Shown piece by piece: positions 7,819 through 63,086 of a stretch of 64,000 bases of DNA. Made by a program: the position numbers and the translations under genes. The stretch's first letter is position 1. The number at the start of each line of letters is the position of its first letter. The DNA is from Octopus sinensis (Eukaryota). Below the pieces are notes generated by a model. It ran no database searches and was not told the DNA's origin. It was given only the letters and a program-made list of their open reading frames with translations. The stretch is from contig NC_043023.1 in assembly GCF_006345805.1 (NCBI RefSeq), positions 18,972,001 to 19,036,000 of the forward strand, given 5' to 3'.

Positions 7819-9200
7819 TATGCTGCCCCTGGTAAATGATGGACTGATCTGTTGACCATCCATTTTTTGTGTTTAAAAAGTCAGTCCCCCTTGTTAATGC
7901 TACGTAACCTTTCTAAATGATGGACTGATCTGAAGGGGGTCATTTAATCAGTTAGACATAATAGTCTTAAGATAATTGTGTGTGTTAATCTTTTTCTTAC
8001 CAGATTTCTGCTGAAATGCATTGCCTTTGTTTCAATACATTTTGGAAATAGTAAAGAATTCAATGAAATAATTTTGTCCTTACTAAGCTAGTGTTTGGAA
8101 CACAAGTTTATTTGAAGCCTTGATGGAAGGTTTTACTTTAGATCTCTTTAAAACAGGGAATTCATACAATAAAAACAAGGGTGGTTTTCAGCAGGTTGGG
8201 ATCAAAAGGGTTCAGCCTTATTGATATTACTATCTTTTATTAAAAACAAAAAATATATGTTTTCTTGTTCATCTTTTGCAGATGAAGAAACAAAAGGTTT
8301 TGAAGATGCTGGATCAGGAAAACTCATCTATGCCATAGTCATCACTTTTATACTTTGTCTTGAAAACATCCTCATAATCTGCTGTGTCATATTCAAATGT
8401 CCTCCTTACATTTGGTTCAGGAACCGTGTCAACGAGTGGATATCTCATAAAGAATACCAGAATCCACCGGTTGAAGTATAAAAATGCTATGTTTTTTTCT
8501 TTTTATTTTTATAGACTTTCAATGATTGCATTAACATATTCTGTTGTGTCTGGGGAGAGTCATTTTCTTTTTGTGCCTTATGATGTAACACGTTTGATGT
8601 AGTGGTTTAGTCTCATCTTTTCAAAAACCCTGCTCAAGTGGTGGCGGGAATAAACACAAAGATACTCACACACATATATTTAGACCAGGGGCTTCCACAC
8701 AGTTTCCACCTCAAGAAGATCACCCTCCGGGCAGTTTCCTACTTGTTGCTAATTGTTATCTACAAATTTCATTCCCAATTTGTGGCCATACTGGGGCACT
8801 GCCTAGAAGTAAGTTTTCGTTGTTGAAGCCTTGTACTTATTCTATTGATCTCTTTTGCGAAACTGCTAAGTTACAGGGACATAAACTCACCAACACCTGT
8901 TGTCAAGTAGTGGGGAGGGAGGACAAACGCAGACACAAAGACCCCTTCCCACATACACACATATGTCTGTGATTATAATTTAATACAATTCATTTTTATT
9001 ATGGATATTCAGGTAATGCATGCACCATGACACATAGTAACCACCCAGGGGCAATACCTGGGGCACATCTACGAATGAATGCTCCAATGACTTTCACAAA
9101 AATCTATATTTTTTAAGGAAATTTTCTACAAATCCACTTCAGATGGTGTAGATTCTTTTTATACTGGAATTTGATGTGACAAAATTTTCTGCCAAAAAAT
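7819..9200 (+). repeat. Segmental duplication, copy 1 (partner ~10409-11575)
   Basis: atgctgcccctggtaaatgatggactgatc...gacaaaattttctgccaaaaaatg aligns collinearly with 10409-11575. Confidence 0.92.
8282..8481 (+). CDS. Gene A terminal exon: stalk + transmembrane helix + cytoplasmic tail (xEETKGFEDAGSGKLIYAIVITFILCLENILIICCVIFKCPPYIWFRNRVNEWISHKEYQNPPVEV*)
   Basis: Acceptor ttttcttgttcatcttttgcag ending at 8281 (phase 1), as in the other cluster exons. A 24-aa hydrophobic run is followed by K, and the stop is TAA at 8479-8481. Confidence 0.7.
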
Positions 9201-10408
9201 GTGATTTTTTTCTGAAAGCTATTTCTAACAAGTCAAGAGACCACATAAAAGTTATGCTTATGTTAATCTCCATGGCAATAGCAATATGTGAACAATGGAT
9301 GATTTCGATTGGCTAAAATTACTTAACTTTAAGTGCATGTAACTTTTTTTATTATTTGTTTTTAGAAATAATGAGTGTGGTTTTCATTATCAGTATCCAA
9401 AACTACATCAGAACTATATTTTTTTAAAAGTAACCAGGTGAAAATTTGAAAGACTAAGTGGTAGAAAGATACTTGTTGAAAAAAAAAAACCTTATTGCTG
9501 TGTAAACAATCATAAATCCTTGTCAAAAATCGTACCTTATCAGGCTTGACCATTACCTGTGATGTAAACTAAATTCCTGTGAAGTTAGACTGAAGTCATT
9601 TAATTAATAAGTAAAACTAAGATCATTTCTGCTTGGCTTTCACTTCAATATCTACAATTTTTGTTCCAATTGAGTTCATATTTGGCGTATTGATACAGTT
9701 TTGTAAACTAATCAATGCCATGAAATTCATTTTCACCACAGATCGATGCATAAACAGTTAATAGCATTTAAAATTTGTGAATTTTTGATAATTTTAGCCA
9801 ATCAAAAACCACAGACATGTAGGTGCCTGTTTCCATAACAACAAGCCAAGTTGCTTACCACGTGTTTTTTTTCTCACTTTTCAAATGCTTAAAACATATG
9901 CAGTATGAAGTGATCATCCGATGTGCTAAAAATAACAGCTAAATAGGTCTCAAATCATGCATTTTGTTTTGTGTTTGCATAACTGTATGAATTTTTGTGT
10001 GTAGAATGCAAATTCACAAAAATTTTCTGAAGATTCCAAAAAATAAAAATAAAAATGTCTTAAGGGGTTTTATGGGATGCATAAAGCAGAATTCCAACAA
10101 TAATTAATTTGTTTACAGTTCACAACATGTGCAGTCATGCACAAAATGACAGCTTCCAAATCCCGTTTTCTGACTGGGTAAAAATGATCAAACTTTAAAG
10201 CCCTGAAGCTTCTTTTAATATTTTTGTGGAAAAAGTGAATTATCTCCTAAGATTCAGCATGAAAAATTACACCAATACACAAAATTTAATTACACAAGAA
10301 TGTTAGGAAGCCTCATGCAGAGTTTGCATCTAATTTAATAAATAAGAAAGTTTCAGTTTCTGTTTGAATAACGAGGAAATTAATTATGCTTAAATAACGG
10401 GTAAATGT

Positions 10409-11575
10409 ATATGCTGCCCCTGGTAAATGATGGACTGATCTGTTGACCATCCATTTTTTGTGTTTAAAAAGTCAGTCCCCCTTGTTAATGCTACATAACC
10501 TTTCTAAATGATGGACTGATCTTAAGGGGGTCATTTAATCAGTTAGACATAATAGTCTTAAGATAATTGTGTGTGTTAATCCTTTTCTTACCATATTTCT
10601 GCTGAAATGCATTGCCTTTGTTTCAATGAATTTTGGAAATAGTAAAGAATTCAATGAAATAACCTCGTCCTTACTAAGCTAGTGTTTGGAACGCAAGTTT
10701 ATTTGAAGCCTTGATGGAAGGTTTTACTTTAGATCTCTTTAAAACAGGGAATTCATACAATAAAAACAAAGGCAGTTTTCAGTAGGTTGGGATCAAAAGG
10801 GTTCAGCCTTATTGATATTACTATCTTTTATTAAAAACAAAAAGTATATGTTTTCTTGTTCATCTTTTGCAGATGAGGACGCTGGAAGCAGCAGATCAGC
10901 AAACGGATCAGGAAGCAGCAGATCAGGAAATGGATCAGAAACAGCAAAGCAGCAAATGGATCAGGAACCAGCAAAGCAGTAAATGGATCAGGAATCAGCA
11001 AAGCAGTTAATGGATCAGGAACTGTGTCACCCGCAGGATATCTCCTAATGAATACCAGAATCCACCGGTTGAAGTATAAAAATGCTATGTTTTTTTCTTT
11101 TTCTTCTTATAGACTTTCAATGATTGCATTAGCATATTCTGTTGTGTCTGGGGAGAGTCATTTTCTTTTTGTGCCTTATGATGTAACACGTTTGATGTAG
11201 TGGTTTAGCATCATCTTTTCAAAAACCCTGCTCAAGTGGTGGGGGCAACAAACACAAACCCACCAACACCGGTTGTTAAGTAATGGGGAGGGAGGACAAA
11301 CACAGACACAAAGACCCCTTCTCCCATACACACATATGTCTGTGATTATAATTTAATACAACTCATATTTATTGTGGATATTCAGGTAATGCATGCACCA
11401 TGACACATAGTAACCACCCAGGGACAATACCTAGGGCACATCTACGAATGAATGCTCCAATGACTTTCACAAAAATCTATATTTTTTAAGGAAATTTTCT
11501 ACAAATCCACTTCAGATGGTGTAGATTCTTTTTATAATGGAATTTGATGTGACAAAATTTTCTGCCAAAAAATGG
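10409..11575 (+). repeat. Segmental duplication, copy 2
   Basis: Collinear with 7819-9200 apart from the altered exon and a shorter SINE remnant. Confidence 0.92.
10873..10982 (+). CDS. Duplicated gene A terminal exon lacking the TM helix (xEDAGSSRSANGSGSSRSGNGSETAKQQMDQEPAKQ*); alternative last exon or pseudo-exon
   Basis: Intact acceptor ending at 10872. The TM-coding segment is replaced by 26-27-nt repeats, with an in-frame TAA at 10980-10982. Confidence 0.45.
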
Positions 11576-11989
11576 GATTTGTGTTAGTACGTATCCCACC
11601 AATTTATTTTTTCATTTTAAATTCTGATATAATTACAATCTACAAACTCTGAAAGGAATTTGTAGAAATTTTCGTTTTTCTGAAAGCTATGAAGAGACAA
11701 AGTCAGTGGAGCATATCTGTGTGTGTGTGTGCTTATTGCTTTAACGTAAATATCTTCAATTATAATTTTAAAGACTACACTTTTATTATAGAAATCGCGG
11801 AACAAATAGACAGAACTGAATGATTCTCATTAAACTTTTGTGATACTATTTTTCAAAGAATGGCTTTAAAACAATTCATAAATAACTCCAGAGACTTTCC
11901 TAAAATCCAGGCCAGGTTTCAAATGTATGTGTAATGCTTTCTCTCTGTGTATGCGTGTTTAAAAAATGTGTATTAATACAAATAAATTC

Positions 11990-61854: not shown

Positions 61855-62985
61855 TTACATTGTTTCAGTCATTTGACTGCGGCCATGCTGGAGCACCGCC
61901 TTTAATCGAGCAAATCGACCCCGGGACTTATTCTTTTTGTAAGCCCAGTACTTATTCTATCGGTCTCTTTTGCCGAACGGCTAAGTGACGGGGACATAAA
62001 CACACCAGCATCGGTTGTCAAGCAACGCTAGGGGGACAAACACACTCAAACACACACATGCACACACATATATATATATACATATATATACGATGGGCTT
62101 CTTTCAGTTTCCGTCTACCAAATCCACTCACAAGGCTTTGGTCGGCCCGGGGCTATAGTAGAAAACACTTGCCCAAGGTGCCACGCAGTGGGACTGAACC
62201 TGGAACCATGTTGGCGTTAGGAAGGGCATCCAGCTGTAGAAACACTGCCAGATCAGACTGGGCCTGGTGCAGCCTTCTGGCTTCCCAGACCCCAGTCGAA
62301 CCGTCCAACCCATGCTAGCATGGAAAGTGGACGTTAAACGATGATAATGATAATGATGATGATGATGATGAATTAGATAATAATAATTAACACTTCTATA
62401 TAGAATTTAACATTATATACATAGGCAGTTTGAGAGAAGGCTTTGAATGTGTAGTTCTCTGTTCAAATATTAACACTTTAGCATTTAAATTGGCCATATC
62501 TGGTTAAAATCTTCCAGACGTTTTCTGTCCAAAGGGGCCAGATCCAGCCTCTCACATCTACCCTCAACTGCTAGGGTGTGGCACTTTTTTTACACAAGGC
62601 TGTGTGGTAAGTAGCTTGCTTACCAACCACATGGTTCCAGGTTCAGTCCCACTGCGTGGTACCTTGGGCAAATTTCTTCTACTATAGCCTCGGGCCAACC
62701 AAAGCCTTGTGAGTGGATTTGGTAGACGGAAACTGAAAGAAAACCGTCATATATATGTATGTGTGTGTGTGTTTGTGTATCTGTGTTTGTCTCCCTATCA
62801 TTGCTTGACAACCGATGCTGGTGTGTTTATGTCCCCCGTTACTTAGCGGTTTGGCAAAAGAGACCGATAGAATAAGTACTGGGCTTACAAGAAGAATAAG
62901 TCCCGGGGTCGAGTTGCTTGATTAAAAGGCGGTGCTCCAGCATGGCCGCGGTCAGAAGACTGAAACAAGTAAAAGAGTAAAAAGA
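61855..62985. mobile_element. SINE B (-) 61855-62210, SINE C tail (+) 62210-62370, SINE B (+) 62597-62985
   Basis: Matches the families described above. Confidence 0.85.
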
Positions 62986-63047
62986 GAGAGTAATCCTGTT
63001 GATAAAAAAATCTGAAAATCAAACATTTTTGTTTTCATCTTTTACAG

Positions 63048-63086
63048 ACTCGACAAGCAGTGAAGGGTACAATATTACCCGAAATA
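63048..63086 (+). CDS. Gene C 39-nt microexon 4 (xSTSSEGYNITRNx); gene continues beyond the window
   Basis: Family acceptor and donor GTAAGT at 63087. It is the closest paralog of the gene B microexons. Confidence 0.82.

Follow-up and report, generated by a model that had tools for sequence, protein, structure and literature searches.

What do the recurrent exons along the forward strand of a 64-kb stretch of the Octopus sinensis genome (CM016885.1:18,972,001-19,036,000; hereafter the window) encode, and what kind of gene family do they represent? An earlier reading of this DNA (the original prediction) had proposed a hidden tandem cluster of modular, single-pass receptor genes with immunoglobulin (Ig)-like domains. 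We found three paralogous type I genes (units A, B and C), arranged head-to-tail and all on the + strand, as had been proposed. They are not hidden, since all three already exist as RefSeq models: unit C is LOC115225372 (292 aa; P0001), unit B is LOC115225073 (113 aa; P0006), and unit A comprises the transmembrane (TM) and tail exons at the 3' end of a further RefSeq gene, whose product is 359 aa long. RefSeq labels them only 'uncharacterized protein', the family is unnamed, and the literature searched yielded no paper on it; 'undescribed' is overstated for genes that already exist as models. The individual features cited were all present at or near their predicted places, far above chance. 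We regard the identity and architecture of the genes as very probable, and it is likely that they form a local + strand tandem array of three paralogues from an octopod-restricted family of type I Ig-like membrane glycoproteins. What is new here is the fold assignment and the exon grammar for genes that were already annotated and unnamed.

Within the window, gene C comprises seven coding exons, all bounded by AG and GT, phase-compatible and free of stops. When spliced, they translate exactly to the peptide of the original prediction and are 100% identical to P0001 over all 233 residues; together with two exons beyond the window they reproduce P0001 exactly. The sequence of the LOC115225372 locus itself matched the window with 0 mismatches over 21,817 overlapping bases. 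The two 249-nt domain exons of gene C are paralogous, with 72% identity in protein and 83.5% in DNA (tblastn E=3.6e-39), and a tblastn search of the window found only these two domain copies. The exon chain of gene B likewise translates exactly to P0006 (113 aa), and the same search found no Ig-like domain exon in it. The predicted variation in domain number was therefore borne out (0 in B, 2 in C), as was the prediction that TM segments and tails differ among paralogues. Based on these chains we propose a common layout, in which a putative non-coding first exon would be followed by a signal-peptide exon, ectodomain units, a stalk/TM exon and a short tail exon. In the ectodomain, a 39-nt microexon and a 249-nt domain exon would form a unit that occurs 0-2 times in these genes and as many as 4 times in paralogues, with extra microexons besides; in the predicted topology of the genes the TM segments are followed by basic residues. 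The products would thus be N-glycosylated type I surface proteins displaying 0-4 Ig-like domains on flexible 13-aa spacers.

The fold of the 83-aa domain was modelled with AlphaFold2, using as input an alignment of 37 'microexon plus domain' units (alignment A4). The microexon and domain together were predicted as a single unit of nine β-strands with a mean predicted local distance difference test score (pLDDT) of 94.4 and a predicted template-modelling score (pTM) of 0.85. A Foldseek search of this model against the PDB gave 70 matches at E<=1e-3, with template-modelling scores up to 0.71 and 10-16% sequence identity; the 50 matches listed were all V-set or I-set Ig domains, namely antibody domains (VHH, VH or VL) or titin M1, obscurin Ig32, twitchin Ig26 and sDscam Ig1. 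Searching 1.84 billion representative sequences with the family profile matched 33 clusters. Among the matches were two proteins of the gastropod Haliotis rufescens (E=1.9e-14 and 6.1e-4), which themselves pass the Pfam I-set model (scores of 56.8 and 31.6 bits, with the cutoff at 23.7), and a coelacanth obscurin (E=5.5e-5). One octopus member, P0008, scored 23.6 bits, 0.1 bit short of the I-set cutoff, and 6 of the 37 single units matched I-set weakly (best E=0.0077). Pfam gave no match on the spliced products of A, B and C, and a profile search of PDB sequences returned only non-significant matches, all of them Ig proteins or viral E1. Thus, because of the AlphaFold2 model, the Foldseek matches and the profile bridge to I-set through Haliotis and obscurin, the label 'Ig-like' holds, and the fold check with AlphaFold and Foldseek that had been suggested came out as an Ig β-sandwich. 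On the predicted structure, it is well supported that the domain is I-set-like and extracellular and, for an Ig domain, highly divergent.

The sequence of the domain combines conserved and unusual features. A tryptophan (W36) in predicted strand C is invariant in 37/37 units. The canonical disulfide between cysteines of strands B and F is typical of the Ig superfamily, though not obligatory; here, the pair is missing, and the B positions are occupied by L or I and the F positions by W or F. Other cysteines are present: C45 and C49 are nearly invariant (35/37 units), C38 and C75 co-vary, with both present in 15 units and neither in 18, and C81-C86 is an optional pair. NxS/T sequons are frequent, at 2.3 per unit. 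The domain therefore resembles I-set domains (Pfam PF07679; titin, obscurin, twitchin and NCAM/Dscam-type) in its sandwich of about nine strands and its strand-C tryptophan, and muscle I-set domains in doing without the B-F disulfide. It differs from them in the C-x3-C hairpin and the co-varying C38-C75, in being, as predicted, extracellular and glycosylated, and in carrying strand A on a separate 39-nt microexon. The two Haliotis proteins, LOC124119024 and LOC124122840, are uncharacterized multi-Ig TM proteins that share the core C-x3-C ... STL.I..V ... W.I.D and the type I layout with the octopus family; however, only the half from C' to F aligns, and the Haliotis repeats are about 97 aa long and clearly recognised by Pfam I-set. 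In a subfamily outside the window (P0020, P0025, P0027, P0029, P0033, P0034 and P0037), the Ig-like domain is followed by a second, Cys-rich module of about 90 aa with 4-6 cysteines (KPKIE...C..C...). This module was not recognised by Pfam, the sole hint being a faint C2-set_3 match in P0034 (E=0.21); the module may represent a second Ig domain of C2-like type.

The exons encoding the ectodomain follow a strict grammar. Six 39-nt microexons are present in the window (Table 1), and a search for the 31-nt intron tail that precedes each of them, allowing <=1 mismatch, found 6 sites where shuffled sequence gave an expectation of 0, in agreement with the predicted microexons. The ectodomain exons are all of phase 1-1, including the 165-nt TM exon of gene B, and therefore duplication, loss or skipping of any of them preserves the reading frame; this accounts for the differences in domain number among paralogues and for cassette isoforms in RefSeq. 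For example, four isoforms of the paralogue LOC115225115 (X8, X9, X11 and X12 of a set of RefSeq predictions numbered up to X12) differ by 13-aa microexons or whole domain exons, and 455 versus 442 aa in one such comparison corresponds to exactly one 13-aa microexon. For genes B and C no isoforms were seen among the RefSeq models. In both structural models, the microexon just upstream of a domain exon forms β-strand A (residues 9-11 and 118-120). In the two-domain model of gene C, C1 contributes strand A of domain 1 and C3 that of domain 2; the other two microexons, C2 and C4, are disordered (pLDDT <50). Because of this difference, the microexons are predicted to have a dual role, as a strand where they precede a domain exon and elsewhere as a flexible linker or stalk that would often be N-glycosylated.

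All microexons and TM exons in the window are preceded by the 3' splice-site motif TTCATCTTTT[AG]CAG. The motif recurs at two loci, L003 and L004, that hold paralogues with proteins just ~40% identical, and at these distant loci it is better conserved than the coding sequence. Furthermore, the microexon was less conserved than the preceding 60 nt in 14/15 pairs (0.64 vs 0.87; 0.87 vs 0.98). From its conservation, the motif may be a splicing-regulatory element. At L003 (22583-22643; the P0002 gene of O. vulgaris), the annotated P0002 lacks a microexon, LISTETYEIVEN, that lies between the first two domain exons and is well formed, being bounded by AG and GTAAAT; either it is a cassette that is skipped or the annotation overlooked it.

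Gene A enters the window only as a 3' fragment. Unspliced, its TM exon (donor GAA|GTATAA) would read to a stop at 8479-8481. The exon is homologous to the TM segment and tail of P0003 and P0004 (E=2.5e-4) and 82% identical to the paralogue P0007, and a TM exon spliced to an MR.(L/P)EAADQQ... tail is also found in P0007 and P0010. The annotated + strand gene with the 359-aa product stops exactly at the end of the tail exon. Unit A is collinear, at 86-96% DNA identity, with the 3' part of LOC115229017, a complete and close two-domain paralogue with matching exon order. Thus, of the three units originally predicted, B and C are present and A is a 3' portion, for which tblastn found neither a signal exon nor a domain exon in 1-8281. 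Gene A must begin before position 1 of the window, on the far side of a C2H2 zinc-finger open reading frame (ORF) whose 3' end occupies 1-471 (+; 84-bp finger period, stop at 469-471). Elsewhere in the family, P0028 is a chimeric zinc-finger/Ig-like gene model, and this chimera together with the zinc-finger ORF on the same strand suggests that the two families are interleaved in the genome. A 100-N assembly gap (6721-6820) lies ~1.5 kb upstream of the TM exon, and collinearity with LOC115229017 ends at about 8193; the domain exons could therefore be missing from the window partly through rearrangement or an assembly problem. The TM-exon region also carries a ~2.6-kb local tandem duplication (7819-9207 vs 10410-11580; 93-97% identity), and the 5' and 3' flanks of the tail exon are its second copy. 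In that copy a low-complexity insert of GGATCAGGAA/GCAGCA type takes the place of the TM-coding core; two of its frames are open, and RefSeq reads frame 0.

Genes B and C share their upstream organization. The signal exons of both exist as predicted, although 'near-identical' overstated their similarity, which is 78% in DNA and 10/15 residues in protein. The conserved block upstream of each gene (14016-14466 vs 45830-46333) is 83% identical (E=1e-158). Its first ~125-150 nt are a dispersed repeat, so that the block anticipated at 14.2k and 46.0k is unit-specific only in its core; this core is 93% identical, the highest of any part of the units. The core closes at a conserved GTAGCAG|GTAAGA donor, beyond which similarity decays, and the signal exons of B and C have an acceptor just 3 nt before the ATG. 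Because of this donor, this acceptor and a TATA-like stretch, we infer that the block comprises the promoter and non-coding first exon of both genes. At the 3' side, an AT-rich block was found in two copies (Table 1) with 78% identity (E=3e-38), as the original prediction had it. However, the second copy does not lie at the end of gene B, whose coding sequence ends at 29011, and no counterpart was found within 10 kb downstream of gene C; its reading as the 3' end of gene B was unsupported and was dropped.

Table 1. Positions of the exons, putative regulatory segments and repeat arrays of the three units, numbered from the first base of the window
Feature	Position	Strand	Details
Window (Octopus sinensis, 64 kb)	CM016885.1:18,972,001-19,036,000	forward	
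Gene A, acceptor motif TTCATCTTTT[AG]CAG	8260-8281, 10851-10872	+	unit A
Gene A, stalk/TM/juxtamembrane exon	8282-8475	+	phase 1
Gene A, cytoplasmic tail exon	10873-11010	+	MRTLEAADQQ...NQQSS, then stop
AT-rich conserved block with AATAAA	11993-12166	+	possible end of gene A 3' untranslated region (inferred)
Gene B, putative promoter and non-coding first exon	14140-14429	+	TATA-like 14200-14219 (inferred)
Gene B, signal-peptide exon (coding part)	19107-19152	+	chain translates to P0006
Gene B, microexon 1 (STSSEGYNISQY)	22266-22304	+	39 nt, phase 1-1
Gene B, microexon 2	24265-24303	+	same sequence as microexon 1
Gene B, stalk and TM exon	25971-26135	+	165 nt, phase 1-1
Gene B, last coding exon	28959-29011	+	stop at 29011
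AT-rich block, second copy	33751-33933	+	4.7 kb past gene B stop
Gene C, putative promoter and non-coding first exon	45988-46296	+	TATA-like 46050-46069 (inferred)
Gene C, signal-peptide exon (coding part)	52184-52229	+	chain translates to P0001
Gene C, microexon C1 (SAKTESYEIIQN)	55450-55488	+	strand A of Ig-like domain 1 (predicted)
Gene C, Ig-like domain 1 exon	55781-56029	+	249 nt, phase 1-1; strands A' to G (predicted)
Gene C, microexon C2 (PTRTGSSEIIQN)	57805-57843	+	predicted disordered inter-domain linker
Gene C, microexon C3 (LTKAESYEIYQH)	58797-58835	+	strand A of Ig-like domain 2 (predicted)
Gene C, Ig-like domain 2 exon	61182-61430	+	249 nt, phase 1-1
Gene C, microexon C4 (STSSEGYNITRN)	63048-63086	+	predicted disordered stalk
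Gene C, TM exon	64741-64900	+	beyond window (window-equivalent)
Gene C, last exon	66357-66375	+	beyond window (window-equivalent)
Acceptor motif TTCATCTTTT[AG]CAG, microexons	22244-22265, 24243-24264, 55428-55449, 57783-57804, 58775-58796, 63026-63047	+	
Acceptor motif TTCATCTTTT[AG]CAG, gene B TM exon	25949-25970	+	
Intron-1 repeat arrays	19187-21515, 21645-22155, 52350-52943, 53183-54008		

Named representatives of the family come from O. sinensis, O. bimaculoides, O. vulgaris and Argonauta hians, all of them 'uncharacterized' or 'hypothetical', and three further cluster representatives come from Logan assemblies. No squid or cuttlefish protein was among the matches of the family profile. 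Besides the coelacanth obscurin match, the two Haliotis proteins were the only non-cephalopod relatives that the sequence searches turned up. 'Cephalopod', as first suggested, is thus too wide a label: all named members are from octopods (Octopus, Argonauta), and a gastropod has distant relatives. Other members lie on the same 21-Mb chromosome at 5.5, 11.7 and 12.3 Mb, not adjoining the window, which is therefore one local three-gene array in a scattered family. The two domain exons of gene C, compared with each other, gave proportions of synonymous and non-synonymous differences of 0.27 (pS) and 0.14 (pN) and a ratio of non-synonymous to synonymous substitution (dN/dS) of 0.47, demonstrating selective constraint on the domain exons. 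Positive selection was rejected at this resolution, and the sequences point to recent duplication under relaxed constraint. The array would have arisen by segmental duplication followed by heavy repeat turnover.

The DNA of the window is repeat-rich (satellites, SINE-like arrays, i.e. arrays resembling short interspersed elements, and microsatellites), and tRNA and Rfam scans of the whole window were empty. Between B and C lies a 3.7-kb degenerate (TTAGGG)n-type array (34065-37751) that includes units like TTTGT[GA]TTAGGG and whose GC skew is about +0.9 to +1.0, whereas the matching paralogous site upstream of gene C (47917-47945) holds just 2-3 TTAGGG-like units; judged from the two sites, this interstitial telomere-like repeat probably arose by post-duplication growth of a short seed. 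Intron 1 of gene B contains a 44-bp minisatellite in 53 copies; long (ATC)n arrays occupy equivalent intron-1 positions in B and C, and C also carries an 826-bp (GTG)n array. Retroelement remains include a YADD-containing reverse-transcriptase fragment upstream of gene C (50163-50681, +), a reverse-transcriptase C-terminal fragment (42582-43079, -) and an element-like ORF adjoining the N gap (6986-7285, +). Gene B terminates within a SINE-like repeat (28990-29100), which supplies its final codons and stop and belongs to a 184-bp family also present at 23432-23965, 26223-26759 and 59929-61066. Another repeat family directly follows the last exon of gene C (L001 24192-24320). The C-termini of genes B and C appear to have been recruited from mobile-element sequence.

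Several observations weigh against reading the three units as a tandem array of working Ig-like genes. The domains of gene C fall below every Pfam Ig model, with no Pfam Ig match even at E<=10. The domain exons, at 83.5% identity, are not more conserved than the introns beside them (82-90%), and their conservation is therefore partly just a product of recent duplication. The 5' exons of gene A lie outside the window, and its TM-exon query returned the 82% paralogue P0007 rather than the 359-aa product. The RefSeq models of all these genes are themselves predictions. Gene B has no domain and takes its C-terminus from a SINE-like repeat, and for these two reasons may be decaying; we take it for a derivative that lost its domain exons, and its ectodomain, going by the predicted layout, would be just a short glycosylated stalk.

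An alternative is that the array consists of partly decayed duplicates, in which B, and perhaps A, are non-functional relics and only C works. Such decay would agree with the missing domain exon, the two identical microexons and the SINE-like C-terminus of gene B, with the position of unit A, which is without 5' exons within 8 kb and adjoins an assembly gap and a rearranged flank, and with introns full of satellites and retroelement fragments. Yet gene B retains an intact ORF, canonical splice sites and the 93%-conserved promoter/first-exon block, and RefSeq models both A and B as protein-coding; we consider decay a lesser possibility, though one to be taken seriously. A more radical version, in which the repeated exons are mobile-element fragments or chance ORFs, might be suggested by the high repeat content of the window and by the dispersed repeat in the upstream block. 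However, that repeat is limited to the first ~125-150 nt of the block. The domain/microexon units are found exclusively within genes, in order, on one strand and in consistent phase; according to the models they adopt an Ig fold, and Argonauta and, more remotely, Haliotis have conserved counterparts. A transposon origin, which the original prediction had named as an outcome that would overturn it, is effectively refuted on these grounds, and we rejected it as exceedingly improbable.

Taking the units as an array of type I Ig-like glycoproteins, their products would be cell-surface adhesion or recognition molecules, ligands or co-receptors with little intrinsic signalling. The tails of A, B and C are short, and a regular-expression scan found no immunoreceptor tyrosine-based inhibitory, switch or activation motif (ITIM, ITSM or ITAM) in them, the single match being YQN in tail A; little autonomous signalling is expected because of these two properties. 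We infer, tentatively, that the proteins act in adhesion or recognition through their Ig-like domains, a reading we hold to be plausible but somewhat short of probable. The original prediction instead favoured fast-evolving immune or self/non-self receptors, which hemocytes or epithelia would use against pathogens or conspecific tissue. With their signal peptide, Ig ectodomain, single TM segment and tandem arrangement, the genes do have the topology of the CD2/SLAM/CEACAM clusters, whose type I Ig-like glycoproteins likewise vary in domain number and tail. CD2 and CEACAM N domains (membrane-distal) also lack the canonical disulfide, and by analogy the octopus domain is like them. The allorecognition loci Hydractinia Alr and Botryllus FuHC/fester also encode lineage-specific type I receptors in tandem, which have divergent Ig-like domains and are alternatively spliced. 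Relaxed constraint and microexons more diverged than their flanking introns would be in line with rapid evolution, as would the closest O. bimaculoides protein, which shares just 70% identity with gene C across 29% of the query. However, there is no significant sequence homology to CD2/SLAM/CEACAM: Pfam gave no match to these families, and in the profile search of PDB sequences CD2 reached only E=0.13 to 0.34. The window genes also have no C2-set domain, and the octopus tails are without the ITSM, ITIM and ITAM motifs. Furthermore, the dN/dS of 0.47 between the paralogous exons is below 1, with no non-synonymous excess, and would set the genes apart from the Alr and FuHC/fester systems; octopuses are solitary rather than colonial and, to our knowledge, have no described allorecognition. 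An immune or self/non-self role is thus not supported by these data and appears quite unlikely.

The exon grammar raises a further alternative, a neural or epithelial adhesion 'code' assembled from microexon and domain cassettes in the manner of Dscam, sDscam or LAR-RPTPs. The consistent phase-1 design, the LOC115225115 isoforms that differ by 13-aa cassettes, the family-wide 3' splice-site motif that is conserved above the coding sequence, and the presence of sDscam Ig1 among the fold matches listed all speak in its favour. Precedents come from Dscam/sDscam cassettes and LAR-RPTP microexons, in which, according to two reports (PMC4835542, PMC10883964), alternative exons for parts of Ig domains or for inter-Ig linkers modulate adhesion; the second describes microexon-dependent adhesion codes in LAR-RPTPs (PMC10883964). 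In contrast to those systems, the octopus genes have only a handful of alternatives each, no mutually exclusive exon arrays and no homology to them beyond the fold; the isoforms are RefSeq predictions; and the conserved intron tail could be a plain strong polypyrimidine/acceptor signal inherited by duplication. We therefore judge such a code unlikely. A narrower form of it, with the strand-A microexon as a diversification device that gives a small combinatorial surface code, an octopod analogue of the Dscam and LAR-RPTP microexon codes, is a speculation to which we give little credence. If true, the choice of the microexon in front of a domain exon, or extra microexons inserted as linkers, would alter the edge strand, glycosylation and spacing of the Ig-like domains, and a splicing factor that binds the conserved intron motif would regulate the surface code.

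The finding does not open a long-standing question. Its immediate use is that the fold, the exon grammar and the A4 profile can now be attached to about 30 'uncharacterized' protein clusters, where annotators and single-cell atlases can draw on them. Expanded protocadherin and C2H2 zinc-finger families are a known feature of cephalopod genomes, and an octopod Ig-like family that is invisible to standard domain searches would add to the lineage-specific cell-surface repertoires. Altogether, the family could matter for neural wiring, for sensory epithelia or suckers, for immunity and for reproduction.

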